From the NCBI GenBank assembly GCA_946965045.2, contig OX337228.1, forward strand, positions 5,208,001 through 5,272,000: a DNA stretch of 64,000 bases. The letters are read 5' to 3'. Of the stretch, positions 3,037 to 54,364 are shown piece by piece. The notes under the pieces are model-generated. The model worked only from the letters and a program-made list of their open reading frames with translations, searched no databases and was not told where the DNA came from. Position numbers and translations under genes: made by a program. The DNA comes from Epithemia pelagica (taxonomy: Eukaryota; Protista; Bacillariophyta). Positions within the stretch are counted from its first letter, which is position 1; each line of letters starts with the position of its first letter.

Positions 3037-3619
3037 TCTACCAGGAAGAAATGGAACGGTTTTAATAAGGATCTTTTTCAATGTGTCGTCTTTATGGAGC
3101 TTCTCTTACTGTCGAAGCGCTGCAACTGCAACAAAAGACAAAAAGATACGACAATGATGAGATGTGTCGAAGTACGTTTGTGTGCGGACCGCGGACGTTC
3201 ACATACAACTCAGCGACCCCAGCAACACATAATCAAAAGAAAGTATAAAGATCCGAGAAAATTCCGTGGTGATTCACGCTCAAGTTTTACTAGCTGAAGA
3301 ATGGAAGGAGATTCTCCATCCAGTTGACCGCGGGACTAGGTAATCCCGAAAACAATGCGCGCCTGCCCATTGCCCATGAGACAACAAGACCAAGACAATG
3401 GTCGCGAATGCGGAACGAGCAATGGCGCAATCCCAATCTTCTTTTCAGAGATAAGCTTTGCTTGCCTATATTTCGTATTGCAAATCTCAGAAGCAACAAG
3501 CTTGTCATTCAGTGTAAGGAAAAACATCGTCATCGGCGTACCCGAATCAGTTCTTGATCTGCCAGGAATCGGACAAGAAGCAAGCAATTATCCGAGCGGG
3601 CACTAACGAACGAGCAACA

Positions 3620-3907
3620 ATGGGGAACGACGCAAGTACGATGGTGGCTGTCGCCAGTGCAAAGTCCAAAATGAACAGCACCTTGGACAGCATAAATAAA
3701 AGTTTGGATGGGACGGCCCAGAAGGAGGAAACACACTTGGCTGGCTGTGCCACAAAAAGAGAATCGGACCAACGCAGAAAAGATCGAGAGCGCGAATACG
3801 AGCTGAAGAAACAGGAAAGAGCCGCACGGAAAAAGGCTCTGTCAAGTCAGTGGGAGTCGAATCGAAAGCTGAATGCAGACAAGCCGGCCAAGAAATCGCT
3901 GTGGTGA
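3620..3907 (+). CDS. Small charged coiled-coil protein with an N-terminal Met-Gly
   Basis: Within ORF 3554..3907; ATG 3620 gives MGNDASTMVAVASAKSK... followed by an E/K/R-rich helix. Confidence 0.6.
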   Translation: MGNDASTMVAVASAKSKMNSTLDSINKSLDGTAQKEETHLAGCATKRESDQRRKDREREYELKKQERAARKKALSSQWESNRKLNADKPAKKSLW

Positions 3908-44782: not shown

Positions 44783-45589
44783 AATAGAAGAGCAGTTAGA
44801 ATTTGCCACGACAAAAATGTAGTTGAATGTTTCCATTGGTACTGCACCAATGTTGAGAGACTGTAAATCAATCTCCTCCGACTGATGACCACGTTTGTTG
44901 AGGATTTTTGATAGTCCTTTTCGAAGTAGGAACAATCCGGTCCATACATTACGATGGAAACATCGAGGAGGGACACACAGTTCAATAGGGTTGTATTCTG
45001 GACAATAATCCATGGGGAAACATTCAATCTCCTTTGGCTCAATAGGTACTAGAGATGGAGAAGAGTCATTTGGGGAAACAGGGGGCTCCTTGTACCGAAC
45101 GATGAAAACATTCGATAAGCCATGAGCCCAGGCATTGGCAGGATCTTGGAACTCTTCAATGGAGAAAACAAAGGCAGGGAAACGTATCTTGATTTCCTTG
45201 GCATTCAGATTGCGAGCGACGATCCTTTGGTTGGACTTGTAGAGCTCGACATTCTCACAACCGACGCCTTCCAACAATTTGTTGGCTGAATGGGGAGGTA
45301 TGTCCGGATGACAACGTAGCTTCTTTTGTGGAAACAATGGGTAGAAAAGACGGAGGGACACTCTCCCATGATCCTTGAAGAGTTGGCATATCGTGGTTGT
45401 GCCATTATCTTGGTCGGCAAGACAGATGTGGACGAAGGTATTCAATCGGAAGCAATCATTGAAATGGGGAATGTACACAGGAGATTCATCGTCGCTCATA
45501 CTTGCGATAATCAAATGGACCAATACATGAACTGGATTGAGTGATAGGGTTGTTCGGAATAGTTGGTATGAGCAAGGTGGTCTTATCAA
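44576..45589 (-). pseudogene. Convergent accessory ORF of the outer element (possible BAH-like domain), probably truncated
   Basis: 337-aa ORF with ELYKS...I...PAFVF. Overlaps the plus ORF tail-to-tail by 207 bp, and its tail is antisense to that ORF. Confidence 0.5.
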
Positions 45590-45878
45590 AGGGTCTTGTC
45601 ATTGTGCTTTGCATCGGAGGAGATTGGCATCAGGCGTCCAATGGATCATTGATTGCTTCCGAGAGACCTGTACCGTTCTTGAACTGGTACTCATAAAGGA
45701 CAATTCTTGCTAGATATTGTTAAAAGAGTCAGAAATGAATTATGTCACAGTGGGAGTGGATTTGGGAGCTACTTATAGACGCGGGCCGGTTTTCAGAGGC
45801 ACGTGTCTCACGTTCGACAAGGGGTACAGTAAACCCCGATTTTGTACTTTAGTACTATTTTCCACTTCTCTTGAAGTC

Positions 45879-45928
45879 TCATAACCTATTAGAACGTACC
45901 TCCAAGGTGCATCATAACCTATTAGAAC
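45879..45928 (+). repeat. Subterminal 17-bp direct repeat TCATAACCTATTAGAAC x2
   Basis: Copies at 45879-45895 and 45912-45928. Confidence 0.9.
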
Positions 45929-46120
45929 ATGCCTCCAGCGTGCAACAACAACAGATGCAAAAGCAAAGCGGGTGATAAACTACTACGGATATGAACGAGC
46001 ACAACAACAGACATGTCAACAACGTGCACTGCTCACTACTACTACTACTTATTCCTGGCGGGTTGGTTCATTATTCAACAATCAAACAAGAATCATGAAC
46101 GGCTGCCCCACCACCTGTGA

Positions 46121-48072
46121 TTAGTTCTTCTTTTTGTTGTTGCGTCGCGTCAACCGACGAGCAAACAAAGGTGAGTCATCGCTATCATTGCTGTTGTTGT
46201 TGTTGTTCCATTTCTTCTTCTTCTTCTGTAACTCATCATCCTCTTCACGTTCATGTCGTGAATCAGGGCTCATCAAGTCGGAAGCCTTGAGAAGGCGCTC
46301 GTCTTGCATCATGGTGACATCCTGAGAAAATGAGTCCTTGGTGTACACAACACCATCGTCCGACGACTCGTCAGTTGAGGCTTCTTCTTCTCCTTCTCCT
46401 TCGTGAATGGTACCAACCCCGTGGTCCGTGCGTTCAGCATCCTTCATCTTGAAGGCAATGACGCTCAACGGGTCTTTGGATTGCATCGAACGGTGACGCT
46501 GGTCGAGGTAAACAAGCTTCCAGCAGTCACCGTCGATGCAAATGGTTCCTGGAACCGATACAACAAAAAGGTAAGTACGTGAAACAGCAGAGACAAGTGT
46601 ACAACGTGTTTCTCACCTGTGAAGTTGTCCACAGAAAACGAAAAAGGCGACGAAGACGACGATGACGACACGACAATGCCATCAGTGGCAACACCATTGA
46701 GGACAGCAGTGGTGCCTGAAGCTTGGTCCTTCAGGATTGCCGTGAGGCAATATCCATCCGGTTGCTTCTGCTCATCTGCTTGCATGGTTTCCAAAAAGTG
46801 AAGAGATGCAACAATCAAACGAAGTGCTTCTCCACCATGTGTAGAAGAGCTTGCGTGCGCTTCCCGCCTTGTCCGCAACAAGACTGCACACGTGCTTGAC
46901 CTGTGGGAACGACGTTCCCACTTTTTGAATATCAACAATCATTCCACAATCGGGAATGATGAGAGAGCGAAGCACATGGTGATGCAAGATGCAACAATCA
47001 AACAGCGCAGGAGGCCACTCCATCGTCCGCGCCAGCAGCCAAGGACGAGGACGGCGACGGAACTAACACAACAAACAAACTTTGACGACGACGACAACAA
47101 CCCAATCCACGGACCACGGAGCTGACAGCAAACAACAACAACAACAAAACACGCCACGGCGACATCAACAAACAACAACAACAACAAAACACACCACGGC
47201 GACATCAACAACACAATCCACGACGCTGACAGGAAACAACAACAACAACAACACCAACAACACAACCCGCGACAACAAGCGACGACAACAACGACGACGA
47301 CAACACAACCCGCGACGAAGACAACAGCAACAACGTCAAGACAAGCCGTGGCAACAACAACACACCACTGCGACATCAACAAACGACAACAACAACACAA
47401 TCCACGACGCTGACAGGAAACAACAACAACAACACCAACAACACAACCCGCGACAACAAGCGACGACAACAACGACGACGACAACACAACCCGCGACGAA
47501 GACAACAGCAACAACGTCAAGACAAGCCGTGGCAACAACAACAGTAGCAACACAAGCCGCGACGACAACAACAACATCAACAACGACAACGCAAGCAACC
47601 ACGCTGACCTCAAACAACAAGAAGAAGAACGACAACGACACAAGCCACGACAACACACGCCCCCGTGGCAGAAGCAACGGAAAAGAACAGGACTGCTGGT
47701 GGCGGCAAAAACGACGCAACAACAATGAGATTGACTGGTGGAATGTTTGAGGTCGGAATAGTAGACCGTGATTCAGAGGATCACATGTGGACTCGGAGCC
47801 ACAGTGCCGCTCTCTTTGTCGGCAAGACAAACTTTGGGCATGGCTTTCAAGTGTCTTACACCGGCGCCGACAAAACGCTGGTCCATAAGACATTTCTGTC
47901 CCATGAAGTGTTGGCTTGGGATGTCTTTCGTGTCAGGAGTCAACGCAATGGACACGAGGGACTCGAGTTCTTCGCAGTCGTTCCATTGCCTTTGGGACAT
48001 GAAGGAGACCGATGTCACGTTGGAGAAGAGTGTCGGGAGTGGATGCTTCGCTTCACCATCATGGGGCACCAT
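46121..48072 (-). CDS. Putative second, spliced gene of the inner element (unknown product; acidic then basic C-terminus)
   Basis: A clean GTGAG...CAG intron at 46549-46616 joins ...SVDNFT|GTICIDGDCWKLVYLDQRHRSMQSKDPL...RRLTRRNNKKKN*. 5' exon(s) are uncertain; ORF 47773..48072 is a candidate. Confidence 0.45.
47030..47720. repeat. Low-complexity ACA/ACG array with an internal ~180-bp tandem duplication
   Basis: CGACGCTGACAGGAAACAACAAC...GTCAAGACAAGCCGTGGCAACAACAACA occurs at about 47221-47361 and 47405-47542. Confidence 0.9.
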
Positions 48073-48201
48073 GAGTCTTTCAAGCTCCTAAAAACAGCGT
48101 GCCGTGACAGTGGTTTCCCGAAGCGGGGACTTGTACTAGAGCAAGCTTAGTCATTAACCAAAACCTTACTTAGTATTCCTTACATGCGATTATGGTAGCT
48201 A

Positions 48202-51200
48202 TCATGATTCCGACTGAAGCAGCTTTTGGTGTCGTAGTTCATCAAGTCGGGGGTACTTCTCCTCTTGGATAGCGAACATCGATAGAAGTGCCACCCGCTC
48301 AGAGTCACGCAAGGCCTTGTGCTTGTTGCCTTTGTAGGATTTGGGGGCTTCTTGATCACCCCCCTCACCATTTCTCCTGTTCACGTTCCGTTGTACCGCT
48401 TTTGTGACCGCAACAAGCCTGTCTTGCACTGCGTCATTCTTTGTCATCACCTCCAACTGAGCTACAACTTGCCCCTTTGTTGAATGGTTTAGAGACTTCA
48501 TGCGGCTTTCCATCTGCGCCCCAGTCTGATGGGCGCGCTCGCCTTCATCTTCACCCAAATCACCGATTCCGCCGTACCGTTTCACTGCGTCAAGTGCATG
48601 GTCTTCCAAAATGTGCATCTTGGGTGAAATTGGGATGTCGAGTGCTCGCCATACCGAAGAAGCATGCTTCAAATGATGCTCTAAGTGGAGCACCTGTTGT
48701 GGCGTGATGTGATTCCGAGGCGTCTGCAAAATAGAAAAAGTGGCATCGAGATGCCCCATCAATCGTTCATAGGCATCAATCACCCTTTTGATTGTCGCAT
48801 TATCCACCCATTTCTGTTCGTCCGGGAGGTCCCGGACGTAGACCCAAATCTCTTCGAAGATAAACTTCCGATCAACCAACACTGTGCTGCAGGGGTTGCC
48901 TTGCAGAGCACCCCCATGAAACGCTGCCCTGTCAATTCCATGGGCACGCTCGATCTCTTCGAACTTGCGATAGACTGGTTGTCCATGCTTTCGTGAGTTC
49001 TCAGGGACACTCTTCTCTTTGTCCCATTCAAGTTTTGCTTCTTTAACCAACTTTGCCCTTGCCTTCCGCTCACCATCCTTCTCCTTCAGGCTTTGTTTCA
49101 ACAAAGCAATCTCAGCTGCAATGTGCTCATCCGGAACCTGTTGTTGTTGTTGTTGTTGTTTTTCCTGTTTCTGCCGCGTGATTTCCATCAGCTCGCTCAC
49201 CACTTGTTCTTCTTCCTTTTTCCGTCTGAGCCATTCCGTTTCAAGATCGATCCAGGCTGCTGTGTAGATCTCACAGGCAGCCTGGAGATCACTGTACAAA
49301 CAATCTAGAGCCTTGTTCACAACGCCCAACTTGATGTGGAGAACAGGCATTGACACATGACACACATCCACGGCAGTAAGCAAAGGCACATTTTTTATTC
49401 CCTTTCGCAGGGCACCCTTTGCATTCTCATCGAGCGTTTTGTTGTATTCAAGCTGGGCCTTCATTGTTGCAAGCGACCACTTTGTGCCTCGAGCATGACT
49501 AAGTGGCTGCCATTCTGCCTTTGTCAGCTGACAAAAGGCACACCAGCAGCTAGACATGCCTTCTCGCCCATAGTTGGTCATAATTTGGGCTAGGTCTCCT
49601 GCCAAGAACACTTCTACTGGGAGTCCTCCATAGAAGCGTGTGTCGCTAGGTTGGTCAGGACGTGACCCCGCAAGCCTTGAGTAGTACCACTCTTCATTTT
49701 CATTTAGTTGGGCTCGCTTCCACACGTCGATACCGCCTTTCTCTGTCAACTGACTTAGCGCACTGTCTAGTTTTGGCATGTAGGTGCTTTTCAGGATCTC
49801 GTAGGTGTCCTTCTTGCACCTAGCATCTGCTAGACTGTAGGAGTCTTTGTGTTCCGTCCACTTATTTGAGCTAGGGTCATGTTTCCGACAAATTAAGACC
49901 GCATGGGCACAAGAGAAGCCTTTCCCATGGTCGGCCGACACAACCATATCAAAAGAGGTCCAATGCTGTCGAGTGTCAGCTCGATTAAACACAGTATCGC
50001 AAAAGTAAAGCAATACCTGTGTCGCATCTCGCACACTCCATTCGATTGACTCGTTGTTTAATTGTAGCGTATTGCATTCCGGTGCCACAGCCTTCTTAGT
50101 TACTAGGACTCTCTTTAGCTCATCAGGTGAGCTAACCAGGGGACATCCGAACCAGTACTTGAGGTGACGTGCAATCAGTCTTGCCTGCGAGTAGTTTATG
50201 TTTGCGTCCGACCACATGGCAAACGTTGCAACCGGGTCCATTGCAACGCACGCAAACTTTTGTTGTTTCACTGCCTCCTTGACCCCATTCGGAAATCTCT
50301 TGCCGAGATGGGCAAAGAGATTCTTTGCCGTATACTCCATGTCGGTCAGCTCCTCTTCTTGCCCCTCCTCTAACTGATCCTCCTCTAGCTCATCTACCTC
50401 GTCATTTCGCACATCTGTACTCGGCTTCAACACCTTCCGCGGCCTGTCGTTTTGTTTCACGAGTGCTTCCAAGACTTGATCAATCCACTTGAAGTGTCTG
50501 TCTTGCTCATGGAAGCTTTTCAAATTGGTAGATTTTGGTATCCGAACCAAAGATACCATCCTACCGTTTGACATCCGGGTCGTGAGCACATCGTGCTTTC
50601 TTCGCTTGTCAGATAGAGTGACAAGGTCTCGCACAAGATCACTAACCACGCGTTTGTTTGTTGTGTCAATTCCATAGGCATGCAACGTAGGTGTGCTCAA
50701 TTTTTGATTGGGGGTCATAAAACTTTGAACCCCCAACATTTCGCCTCTTTCTTTCTCGTTGTGTTCATACAGTACTTTCATGACGGAGGCGAGGGCACCA
50801 GCAAGATCTTGCTCCTCAAAAGATTCGGATTCCAAAAAGTATTCTTCCATCACATCGAAGAACTCCGGCTTGAAGACTTTCGGAAACAAATGGCAAATCA
50901 GCTGTTGCTTGATGAGTTGATTCCGGCTCACGTGCTGCTTGTTGTTGTTCTGGTTGGTAGCAGGTGTGGTGATCTTTGAATTGTTCTCCATTCTCATCGC
51001 TCGTTTTCTTTCATTCTCCAATGTCTCACTGGAGAGAGAAACTCGCTTTTGCGTCCTCTTGTCATCAGCAGCTGCTCCTCTTGGCCTCTTCAGGATGCTA
51101 CTTCTGCGCCGCCTTGGAGATGGGGTTTTTATCAGCGTTGCTGGATTCGTAGTCGTCCCCGTAGAACTGTCACCAGCTTGTTTTGTTGTTGCATTCAGAA

Positions 51201-51621
51201 GCAGCTTTTTTGTTTGTACTGCAATGGATTTGGTATTTTGAATCGATGGCTTGGTGAAATTTCGGAAGACATAAAGTGGACTTGCACTCGTTTTGTCGCA
51301 ACCCACTTCAAGGAAATGTCGCCGTTGCTCATTTCCATACCTGCTTTTCGTGAGCGCTGTGATGTCTCGTAGGTGAAACCGGTCTAGGAAGGTTTCAATT
51401 TTCCTCTCTTGAACTCTCCACGACGAGGATGTTGATTCGTTCGTTGTTGCCACTCGTGACACCCATCCGACAACACTCAATAGGCACATTAGGGACTCCG
51501 TAGAGATCCCAAGTAGATTAGCGAGACTGTTCTCATCGCTTTCACCTACATTTATGCCATACCACCATGGCCTATTGGCCGAACCAATTTCACGGATCAA
51601 CTTTGCGAGTGCTTCGTCCAT
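48202..51621 (-). CDS. DDE transposase of the Transib/RAG1-core/Chapaev group, intact (1139 aa)
   Basis: Ordered motifs VSADHGKG (D1), LAGDLAQ (D2), CWCAFC, PVLHIKLG, ALQGNPC, ISPKMHILEDH (H-x4-H), GDLGEDEGERAHQ (E). Confidence 0.9.
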   Translation of the reverse strand: MDEALAKLIREIGSANRPWWYGINVGESDENSLANLLGISTESLMCLLSVVGWVSRVATTNESTSSSWRVQERKIETFLDRFHLRDITALTKSRYGNEQRRHFLEVGCDKTSASPLYVFRNFTKPSIQNTKSIAVQTKKLLLNATTKQAGDSSTGTTTNPATLIKTPSPRRRRSSILKRPRGAAADDKRTQKRVSLSSETLENERKRAMRMENNSKITTPATNQNNNKQHVSRNQLIKQQLICHLFPKVFKPEFFDVMEEYFLESESFEEQDLAGALASVMKVLYEHNEKERGEMLGVQSFMTPNQKLSTPTLHAYGIDTTNKRVVSDLVRDLVTLSDKRRKHDVLTTRMSNGRMVSLVRIPKSTNLKSFHEQDRHFKWIDQVLEALVKQNDRPRKVLKPSTDVRNDEVDELEEDQLEEGQEEELTDMEYTAKNLFAHLGKRFPNGVKEAVKQQKFACVAMDPVATFAMWSDANINYSQARLIARHLKYWFGCPLVSSPDELKRVLVTKKAVAPECNTLQLNNESIEWSVRDATQVLLYFCDTVFNRADTRQHWTSFDMVVSADHGKGFSCAHAVLICRKHDPSSNKWTEHKDSYSLADARCKKDTYEILKSTYMPKLDSALSQLTEKGGIDVWKRAQLNENEEWYYSRLAGSRPDQPSDTRFYGGLPVEVFLAGDLAQIMTNYGREGMSSCWCAFCQLTKAEWQPLSHARGTKWSLATMKAQLEYNKTLDENAKGALRKGIKNVPLLTAVDVCHVSMPVLHIKLGVVNKALDCLYSDLQAACEIYTAAWIDLETEWLRRKKEEEQVVSELMEITRQKQEKQQQQQQQVPDEHIAAEIALLKQSLKEKDGERKARAKLVKEAKLEWDKEKSVPENSRKHGQPVYRKFEEIERAHGIDRAAFHGGALQGNPCSTVLVDRKFIFEEIWVYVRDLPDEQKWVDNATIKRVIDAYERLMGHLDATFSILQTPRNHITPQQVLHLEHHLKHASSVWRALDIPISPKMHILEDHALDAVKRYGGIGDLGEDEGERAHQTGAQMESRMKSLNHSTKGQVVAQLEVMTKNDAVQDRLVAVTKAVQRNVNRRNGEGGDQEAPKSYKGNKHKALRDSERVALLSMFAIQEEKYPRLDELRHQKLLQSES

Positions 51622-54364
51622 GACGATCCAAGTTGTTGGAGGCTACTACTCCAGCGGAAGATGGCAAAAATAGTGCAATCGCGAACACTTTCTAGGGTAT
51701 TATGGACAACTATCATCTGAATGAAGCTGTGCAATATGTTCGCGATTGGAGAACTACATCCCGCGGTATCATCATCGTTGATGCGCAAATCACGAGTTCT
51801 GCACTTCAAAAAATGGAACGAGATACGATACACACATGGGCACGTGTGGAGGGTCGGCCGGCGAAGACCTACAACCTAGAGACCAAGACCAAGTGAATAC
51901 TGTAGGCATAATATTACAATACAAAATCGGCTCCTTGTCGAACGTGTCTGGTCGGGACGGCGAAAAAGGCACGTGTTAGCGAACACGGAGGGATCCGAGC
52001 TGCTCGTAACGAACAGTTATCCGTCGTTTTGTCATGCGAGTGTGCTTCAACGGATAGAATGACAGACGATTGTCGGATCCACAAATCCGCAATCCACAAT
52101 CCACACACTCCATATACGACGGCAACAACGACAGCTCTACGATCTACGAAGAAGAAAGACAATCTTTCTCATCCCCGATTCGGTTGCAGTAGCGTCTGTT
52201 CTACTTGGCATTCTCTCGTCTCCTTGAGTACGACGACAACGATGATAAGACGAGTCCCCTCCATTAGACCGCTCTTGTCTGACCTCCATCTTGTGGGGTT
52301 CGTTGGATCAAATCTCCAAACGTTACAATTCATGTTGGATTTTGATTTTGTGGCTCTACGAAGAAGTGGACGACCATCCTCGGCCATCATGGTATATTTG
52401 GTACAATCGGCTTGAATAGTAGTACCATGGACCAGCAGCAGGAGGCAATGGCCGGTGATTGTTCTTTCCCTTGTTACAAGAACGACAAGACATCACTCCT
52501 CGACGACCAACGTGTCTCGTTCCATGAACCTGTCTCGATCTCGCGCGAACCAAAAAGAAAAAGAAGAGAGAAGAAGTGCTACAGTGACTGGAGTGAAACC
52601 GTGCGCGATAGAGCTTTGTGTGGTCGACAAATGAAGAAAGAAGAAGAAGTACCATGGGGGTCGGACTCCATGGGGTCTGGCTGTTCATCCAACCAGTCAG
52701 CCACGAACGACTTGCGACATGACAGAACGAATCTCCACAATGCAATGAGGAGCCACTTTGCGTTGGTATCAAACTGTCTCCCAGCTCGCGTCTGTGCCAG
52801 CTGGGAGATGCCTGCCTTGTTTGACTTCGTCCAGGTCATTTCAGACTTGAATCCAATCGCTCTGAAATGCACAGATGGTCGTCTCTGGGATAATGTTTTC
52901 CCTCTATATATCATGGACTAGTGGCTCTGTAAAATGTGTTGTGTTTCCATCACCCGTGCCTTGCATCAGAGTATCTCCTCTACATAGCACAACTACGGAT
53001 AATGTATTGAGGCTACGGACATGATAAAAAAAGTGTTTTTGCTAGTTTTCACAAAATTGCATTCGTGCTAATGGGATTGTGGTTTCATTCATTTATTAGT
53101 TTGAAGTCATGAGGGTCGACCTGGTTACTTCGGCCAATCGATCGTCCGTCATGGTGCTGCGTTCCTACACGTACACGTGTTCTGTCCAGGGTTCCAACCA
53201 CACCACGTTTAGTCCATTCCTTTTGCTTTTACGATAACAATGGAAATTTGAGTTTGGAGCAACGCGTGGATCATTTTCTTCTACAAGCTGGGCACTCCCA
53301 GCTACATCACCACTAGCAACACCTCTGGCAACACCACCACCTGCATCAGATTGAGTTAGTTGTTGAGAGGCTTGGCTGTACTGTGTGACAATAGGGACAG
53401 AAGAGGTGCTCATGATGATGGTCGAACGTCGAACCCAACAAAAAGCTTTTTGTTGCTCTGTGTAGCATTGGCTCCCTCGCAGCCCTTGCATGCCCGCAGT
53501 GACTTGCACGCAATTTTTGCGAGTGCCCGCGCTAAATTTTTAAATTTGGAGTCCCCCCTCGCACTCGCACCTGCCCTCGCACCAAAAAGTAGCCTGATAA
53601 GTTACCGTCTTAGACCTCTCTAGTACCACATAATTGAACCGCCACGGCGGTAGGACGGCTGAGTTCAGTATTGAGTAGTCCCAGGAGTACGTAGAAAGTA
53701 TACAAGACAGGTAGTAGTATAGTTTATGTCAAATCAAACGTGTCTGTCATCTAGCGGGCAATGGAACGAGCACGACGAAGTCGTAGTGGTGGACGTGTCC
53801 TGACTTGTTGTCAATGCACGGGAAAGCCCACAAAGTCCAATTTTTCCAAGACGGAATTCAACACGGTCGGTTCCACGGCAATGACACCATCGGTTTCATC
53901 CAATTGAGGATGTTCTATAGTTGTAGCAAGAAATACCAAAGTCCAACCGTGCACGAAATGGGGGAATCATTAGGGTGCACCAACCAACAAAAGTTCCTCA
54001 TGGTGTCGTCTCCAGTTGCAACGGAGCCGGTAGAATCTCTCACTGCAGACCATCTCCGAGCAGCATCAACGACCTACGTCATACTCTCCTACCATTCATG
54101 GACACCTTGGAGTTGCACATCTCATTTACTGGAATGATTTTTCGACAATGCAAGCCACTCGTGTATAGGTATAGCGATTAAACGCTTTTCATTCAGTTCC
54201 ATGATTTACAGTGTAGCTAAAGATGGACACAATGTCCGTTTTGTACGAGCGTATATAATGGCCGTGATGTAGTTTCCGGGCTCTTGGCCGTGCAACCAGT
54301 TGTACATTTCGACTGCCATCCTGCCCTTTATCACAATGACAATCATGTATTGGTCAACATTCGT

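Follow-up and report, generated by a model that had tools for sequence, protein, structure and literature searches.

Are the unequal ends of a transposon in the diatom Epithemia pelagica a private accident of one element, or do they reflect a trait of its lineage comparable with the 12/23 recombination signal sequences (RSSs) of RAG1/RAG2? The question is raised by an element lying in a stretch of 64,000 nt (GCA_946965045.2, contig OX337228.1, positions 5,208,001-5,272,000 of the forward strand), the whole of which is referred to here as the window. The element, its target site and its ends are laid out as follows (coordinates are those of the window).

45809-51946, transposase gene on the minus strand: whole autonomous transposon of 6,138 bp, delimited by inverted terminal 14-mers, an empty-site contig (public runs X1 and X3) and four other full copies
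45806-45808, no strand: left copy of the 3-bp target-site duplication (TSD), TCT, which is single at the empty site
51947-51949, no strand: right copy of the TSD, TCT, likewise single at the empty site
45809-45822, plus strand: terminal block CACGTTCGACAAGG of the distal (gene-3') end, identical in all copies
45823-45835, plus strand: 13-nt spacer GGTACAGTAAACC of the distal ('long') end, with a weak, non-significant 5-bp stem formed with its flanks
45836-45858, plus strand: subterminal block 2 of the distal end, a perfect 11-mer followed by 8/12 matches
45879-45944, plus strand: pair of subterminal 33-nt repeats in tandem within the distal end (88% alike)
51908-51930, minus strand: subterminal block 2 of the transposase-proximal end, pairing with the distal block 2
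51931-51932, minus strand: 2-nt spacer AG of the proximal ('short') end, read from the sequence
51933-51946, minus strand: terminal block CACGTTCGACAAGG of the proximal end, read from the sequence

The termini of the element are CAC...GTG, flanked by the 3-bp duplication of TCT. From 45806 the left end reads TCT, CACGTTCGACAAGG, GGTACAGTAAACC, CCGATTTTGTA..., while the right end (reverse complement, ending at 51949) reads AGA, CACGTTCGACAAGG, AG, CCGATTTTGTA.... The 14-mer CACGTTCGACAAGG occurs at two places only in the 64-kb window (45809-45822 on the plus strand and 51933-51946 on the minus strand), as does the 11-mer CCGATTTTGTA (45836-45846, plus; 51920-51930, minus). Block 2 runs to 23 nt, with 19/23 matches between the two ends, and at the end proximal to the transposase 2 nt separate it from block 1, as against 13 nt at the distal one. 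An earlier note on this DNA had described the perfect 14-mer and 11-mer, the 13- and 2-nt spacers and the 8/12 further matches, all of which proved exact on searching the window and comparing the ends. On testing one end against the other, the +11 register was the best, both ungapped (score 13, reached in 0/2,000 shuffles, P<0.0005) and gapped (P=0.002). The element thus has two signal classes that carry the same blocks with spacers about one helical turn apart (2 versus 13 nt here), as in a 12/23-type system. The earlier note had also counted 12 and 23 nt from a terminal heptamer; this arithmetic is correct, but the register is freely chosen and requires that the first 7 nt be taken as the heptamer and that the inner block start at ATTTTGTA.

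Other features of the ends were considered and set aside. The GGGGT...ACCCC hairpin that had been pointed out at the 13-nt spacer is present, but its 5-bp stem is no better than that of shuffled sequence (z -0.9) and is not shared by the relatives described below, and it was rejected as a feature. A 'module permutation' (TACAGTA lying within the long spacer at one end but beyond block 2 at the opposite end) is not claimed, because a 7-mer match of this kind is expected by chance in about 1 of 7 tries. The reverse complement of block 2 contains ACAAAA, but its orientation is opposite to that of the RSS nonamer and the likeness was treated as coincidence. The 33-nt tandem repeats just inside the distal end may be further binding sites.

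For three public sequencing runs of the organism (X1, X2 and X3), Logan contigs were compared with positions 45000-50900; no RNA run was found. In X1 and X3, a contig follows the flank as far as 45808, and its next 30 letters are those that begin at 51950. This is the empty site, carrying TCT once, for which the earlier note had advised looking; the boundaries of the element and its 3-bp duplication are settled by it, and the insertion is seen to be polymorphic. The filled junction is crossed by a contig in run X2. Word depth is about 4x higher on the element than on its flank, in line with several copies, depth not being a copy number. The 90%-identity cluster of the transposase has ten other members, from one ENA assembly, and further full-length copies (n=4) were identified in this assembly at unrelated loci (L001, L002, L004 and L005). 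Two copies are partial (L003 and L006), L003 having flank in common with the window. The five full copies are 99.3-99.5% identical to each other, and in all five the spacers are AG (gene-proximal) and GGTACAGTAAACC (distal). Four of them are flanked by 3-bp TSDs (TCT, TAC, CGT and GGT). The copy without a matching TSD (ACC versus ATA, at L001:5676 and L001:11470) is otherwise intact, and its lack of a TSD may stem from recombination between two copies or from rearrangement of the flank.

The recent insertion proposed in the earlier note is borne out by the exact boundaries, the 3-bp TSD, the intact transposase, the empty site and the near-identical copies at other loci. The element is an autonomous, recently mobile cut-and-paste DNA transposon, and it appears to be currently mobile in the diatom. 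Partial copy L003 (6676 onward) has a 12-nt flank that is the same as at the right end of the window, an open reading frame (ORF) split into 725 + 402 aa and a sequence that departs from the family after ~5.1 kb; it probably represents this locus from a different haplotype or assembly, with additional rearrangement. Contigs in X1 and X2 were also seen to enter the element at 45821 with CACGTTCGTTTG before it in place of CACGTTCGACAA (window 45809-45821), representing either a variant terminal block in another copy or an assembly artefact.

Because the five genomic copies are too young to tell a private difference from an inherited one, the ends of distant relatives were compared, namely five families (L007, F191, L010, F18 and L009) whose proteins are 20-40% identical to one another, using one pipeline with shuffles. 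In L007 (protein P0003, 33%), the candidate ends at 141 and 4698 have CACRTATGKTTCG in common, followed by AG in one and a 13-nt spacer in the other and then by ATGTYGYTCAGGTG, an offset of +11 (P=0.006-0.009). The ends of F191 (P0191, 22%) are fixed by two points of divergence shared by nine contigs, which come from different marine samples; one consists of CACGGTAGTTCA, 3 nt and GCGAATG and the other of the same 12-mer, 13 nt and GCGAATG (offset +10 to +12, P=0.009). For F18, which comprises contigs L014, L018, L021 and L022, the 5' end was set where L021 and L022 start to match and the 3' ends of L018 and L014 by the same 12-mer, CACGATAACCAT. The block TTAGCYGTAG..CTGGTAC of this family lies 31 nt in from the 5' end and 20 nt in from the 3' end (offset -11, P=0.003-0.013). 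The offset in L010 (P0185, 29%) is +11/+12 (P=0.05). Counting the window family, the best subterminal match lies at |10-12| nt in five of six families and in register in none; under a uniform random offset over ~90 values, the chance of five of six is roughly estimated at ~1e-5.

It is very improbable that these offsets are chance or alignment artefacts drawn from noisy short sequences, with nothing beyond the window family. The relatives have short subterminal blocks (7-23 nt), L009 and L010 taken singly are weak, and the end coordinates of some metagenome elements were picked by eye from candidate CAC pairs. Against this, the pipeline with its shuffles was uniform, P was 0.002-0.013 in four families, each with its best offset at |10-12| out of ~90 values, and the ends of F191 and F18 were fixed independently by contig divergence. 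Symmetric ends in other copies, which had been named beforehand as the outcome that would sink the proposal, were not what was found: the 2/13 spacing is present in 5/5 copies and an offset of 10-12 nt in 4/5 distant families, and the difference therefore looks like a trait of the lineage and not a private insertion or footprint. On these sequences the asymmetry looks like a conserved architectural trait.

The sequences of the blocks and spacers change freely between families. A third block (CACTT..TCTTG) lies 51 and 54 nt in at the two ends of the window element, and the distances of the third block are also nearly equal at both ends in F191 (33/34) and L007 (33/38). With the third block near-fixed in these three families, the one-turn shift falls on the middle block. 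The 5' ends (CACGGAKRACAGAAT...) of two further related elements (L012:~950-1035 and L013:~3535-3625) were seen to carry two or three tandem copies of GTAGCC(N)TGGTAC, the first lying 37 nt from the terminus; a motif of this type is block 2 in L010, F18 and L009.

What kind of enzyme acts on these ends was addressed through the single large gene of the element.

48202-51621, minus strand: intact, single-exon DDE transposase of 1,139 aa with a predicted RAG1-core fold, identified from conserved columns, a model and structure matches

With 1.84 billion representatives searched by profile, the family extends to 5,574 clusters at E<=0.001, of which 559 remain at E<=1e-30; a second, word-indexed protein search using the 50-member alignment yielded nothing of use. 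A reduced-alignment search of metagenome contigs gave 17 loci, mostly short, and no locus was found by the same kind of search on viral contigs. Among 50 diverse homologues, D564, C694, C697, H762, K1001, H1008, E1028 and H1031 are invariant and D676, H1003 and E1024 near-invariant. D564, D676 and E1028 are candidate catalytic residues, with C694/C697 and H1003/H1008 as putative zinc motifs; the spacing of D, D, E, C(2)C and H(4)H appears to be nearly that of RAG1. Pfam returned no family for the transposase, for the 12 relatives scanned or for six small ORFs, save a marginal match to DUF1280 in P0191 (residues 435-549, 28.5 bits against a cut-off of 25). DUF1280 is a nematode family and may derive from such a transposase. 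The transposase family itself is very large in marine protists, with thousands of protein clusters and no Pfam model.

A profile of 17 homologues compared with all PDB sequences, RAG1, BbRAGL and HzTransib among them, gave coiled-coil noise only. An AlphaFold model was built on the 50-member alignment (mean predicted local distance difference test score, pLDDT, 82.6); in a Foldseek search of the PDB with it, the first 48 places were all taken by chains of RAG1, BbRAGL and HzTransib (best E 4.7e-12). VIA-align placed model residues 459-1074 on RAG1 460-1008 (Z 23.3, 474 residues, 4.2 A), with BbRAGL (6b40_A, Z 20.8) and HzTransib (6pqx_A, Z 20.4) close behind, and the next matches (Z<=11) covered only a coiled-coil insert at ~786-876. 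The AlphaFold-DB clusters matched by the model were uncharacterised animal and protist proteins and RAG1 itself. The transposase is thus modelled with the RAG1/Transib fold, its likeness to RAG1 and Transib being seen at the level of the fold only. The N-terminal region is modelled as alpha/beta and helical domains, with weak winged-helix-type matches only (E>0.1).

It has been described that the CMCT clade (EnSpm/CACTA, Mirage, Chapaev, Transib and RAG1) shares a D...D...C(2)C...H(4)H...E signature, CA...TG termini and TSDs of 2-5 bp (Kojima 2025, PMC12730594). The transposase possesses D, D, C(2)C, H(4)H and E, invariant or nearly so across the 50 homologues, with the RAG1-core fold in the model, and the element has CAC...GTG termini, a 3-bp TSD in 4/5 copies and an empty site with a single TCT. 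Within the clade, the element differs from Transib in having a TSD of 3 bp instead of 5 bp and a transposase core with no sequence-level match to Transib or RAG1 (17-homologue profile, PDB sequences). No RAG2-like (Kelch propeller) partner, as carried by RAGL elements, was identified among the three ORFs tested in 45809-48200 (121-161 aa), which match no Pfam family; the 161-aa convergent ORF among these has no meaningful Atlas neighbour. For EnSpm/CACTA proper, no match to Pfam Transposase_21 or a related family was obtained, and the termini are CACGT, not CACTA. Chapaev transposases possess an N-terminal Chapa zinc-finger domain (PMC4411706), whereas the N-terminal 460 aa here contain only 4 Cys and 10 His and no Cys-rich Chapa domain. 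The 3-bp duplication and the lack of a RAG2-like gene therefore place the element in the wider CMCT clade and not in Transib or RAG. Of the likeness to Transib/ProtoRAG suggested in the earlier note, the RAG1/Transib fold was recovered; membership was not, given the 3-bp TSD, the missing RAG2-like gene and the missing sequence-level match. The element is a member of a large, unnamed, mostly marine-protist branch of the CMCT clade.

How would such an enzyme use unequal ends? Cutting takes place at the CAC termini, and 3 bp of target are duplicated on insertion. The 14-bp terminal block would be the cleavage site, presumably held by the catalytic core, and the 23-bp subterminal block would presumably be bound elsewhere on this protein, by a distinct DNA-binding part. 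The difference between 2 and 13 bp amounts to one helical turn, and the subterminal site is thus displaced outward by a turn without changing the face of the DNA on which it lies. The synaptic complex would be built on one 'short' and one 'long' end, the left and right ends being non-equivalent, and cleavage would be licensed only for the proper left/right pair, by analogy with the 12/23 RSSs of RAG, the 27/31 terminal inverted repeats (TIRs) of ProtoRAG and the unequal ends of P and piggyBac. The one-turn offset recurs in distant families whose ends are otherwise unrelated, and would therefore be under selection. We give roughly an even chance to the asymmetry being functionally used, with a complex formed on a short and a long end and only the left/right pair being cut; a 12/23-type pairing rule in this element is plausible, though purely inferred.

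Several observations weigh against a conserved and functional one-turn offset. L009, analysed with the same pipeline, showed no significant offset. In four families the long end lies away from the gene, but in F18 it is the gene-proximal one, so that polarity is reversed there though the F18 transposase is closest to that of L010 (34-40%). L021, a close relative of the other F18 contigs, has an offset of 18-20 nt and not 11, with 7 extra nt and a degenerate terminus (CAACG...), and the length of the offset is therefore not strictly fixed. The CGTAGAA motif of F191 lies 34 nt in at one end but 35 and 46 nt in at the other (3') end, and these two copies, 11 nt apart, mean that the asymmetry there may be one of site number and not of spacer length. 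The ends of L007, L009 and L010 come from single metagenome contigs without matching TSDs, and no matching TSD was found in the nine F191 contigs either; chimeric flanks of multi-copy elements in the assemblies are the likely cause for all four families, and the 3-bp TSD therefore rests on the diatom copies only. Regarding the enzyme, the best structural alignments begin after the nonamer-binding domain of RAG1, with no counterpart to that domain in them, and the N-terminal 460 aa gave no significant structural match when a separate model (residues 1-462, pLDDT 71) was compared with the PDB.

The reversal in F18 and the deviating length in L021 are also what would be expected if the indels were neutral and constrained only by phase: the sites would be needed on the same face of the helix, the ends would drift to differ by 0, ~11 or ~21 nt, and the asymmetry would be tolerated and not used. 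The spacer sequences are not conserved between families, and the five copies are ~99.4% identical, so that their common spacers are inherited from one master copy; both fit this explanation as well. Under it, however, an offset of 0 should be common, yet no family is in register and five of six lie at |10-12|. Nor is the change of sign between the closely related L010 and F18 strong evidence against selection, as a single recombination between the inverted subterminal blocks would flip the internal segment and keep the short/long pair. Neutral drift in phase is a possible account, but one that we regard as less probable than a functional use of the asymmetry.

A small ORF arranged tail-to-tail with the transposase is conserved in many relatives (~170-210 aa, motif AP..WTPR.Y..L..S.K.YKV).

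L007:3905-4429, L008:3565-4089, L010:4150-4776, L018:2445-2918, L014:2133-2576, L015:3757-3993 and L027:732-1100, minus strand: convergent small ORF

It belongs to no Pfam family and is undetectable in the window element and in the short F191 element. This ORF bears on another explanation, in which some other factor acts at one end only, using the longer spacer or an additional motif copy as its site, and the difference in length is a by-product; such a factor might be a host bending protein, an accessory protein encoded by the element, or a promoter or terminator element. Besides the conserved accessory ORF, the additional CGTAGAA copy at one F191 end and the short palindromes in some long spacers (TGGCCA in F191, TGCAGCTACA in L007 and the GGGGT/ACCCC stem in the window element) speak for it. 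The palindromes, however, are not significant as structures and are not common to the families, the offset is kept in the window element and F191 where the ORF is undetectable, and a long end that is gene-distal in the window element but gene-proximal in F18 is a poor fit to a promoter role. We therefore hold an end-specific extra function to be improbable, though less so than an artefact.

A further variable part of the element lies within it, between the distal end and the transposase gene.

47082-47750, no strand: region of internal AAC-rich repeats, among them a perfect 125-nt duplication at a spacing of 181 nt; the region differs in length between copies

A deletion variant of 361-364 nt in this region was found in L001 and L002, and the joint 47314>47676 is present in all three runs.

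Among known systems, RAG1/RAG2 resembles the window element in that the transposase model superposes on the RAG1 core and the signals of both start with CAC, are bipartite and come in two versions 11 bp apart. The window element differs in its 3-bp TSD (5 bp for RAG), in the absence of a RAG2-like gene and of detectable similarity to RAG1 in sequence, and in that the spacers between the blocks actually common to its ends are 2 and 13 nt, 12/23 appearing only in the chosen register. ProtoRAG (BbRAGL) of amphioxus likewise has a RAG1-fold transposase and ends made of a CAC-bearing terminal element and an inner element with unequal spacers. Its 5' and 3' TIRs are asymmetric (27/31-bp TRsp), it requires these unequal TIRs, and the spacer lengths are functionally important (PMC8289069). 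In contrast to the window element, the ProtoRAG spacers differ by 4 bp and not by one turn, and it has a RAG2L partner, 5-bp TSDs and an animal host. Transib elements such as HzTransib share the modelled fold, the CAC termini and cut-and-paste DDE chemistry, but have 5-bp TSDs and show no relation at the sequence level in a profile search; most Transib families have symmetric TIRs (PMC8289069), whereas the ends here are asymmetric.

The 3-bp TSD with CAC...GTG termini is an EnSpm-like pattern and recalls the CMC superfamily (CACTA/EnSpm, Mirage and Chapaev), from which the element differs in that its transposase has no Pfam match (plant CACTA included) and no Chapa-type N-terminus, and in that there is no TnpA-like second gene. 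To our knowledge, a fixed one-turn asymmetry of the ends is undescribed for this superfamily. The P element (21/9 bp) and piggyBac (3/31 bp) combine a terminal repeat with an internal transposase-binding site at unequal spacers, and both ends are needed. Their transposase folds are unrelated and their spacer values are others, and they serve only as precedents for asymmetric ends as such.

The RAG1-like motifs of CMC-type transposases were already known (PMC12730594), and a preference for asymmetric bipartite ends has been proposed to go back to the ancestral RAG transposon (PMC8289069). In the literature searched, no description was found of a one-turn end asymmetry in a RAG1-fold transposon outside RAG/RAGL that is conserved across a large protist branch. 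That the one-turn difference is an ancestral and functionally enforced property of this large, undescribed branch of RAG1-fold transposases is a stronger statement than that of use in a single element, and we put it forward as unlikely, a little more so than neutral drift. If it were true, asymmetric '12/23-like' synapsis would not have originated with the RAG/RAGL lineage; it would either be far more ancient, dating from the common ancestor of the CMCT clade, or have arisen repeatedly as a solution favoured by the fold. How the 12/23 rule arose is an unsettled point in the evolution of V(D)J recombination. Here, a far more distant transposon of predicted RAG1 fold shows an exact one-turn asymmetry, common to several deeply diverged marine relatives. 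With its intact copies, known empty site and many natural spacer variants, it offers a natural system suited to asking whether the architecture of the enzyme favours the pairing of unequal ends.

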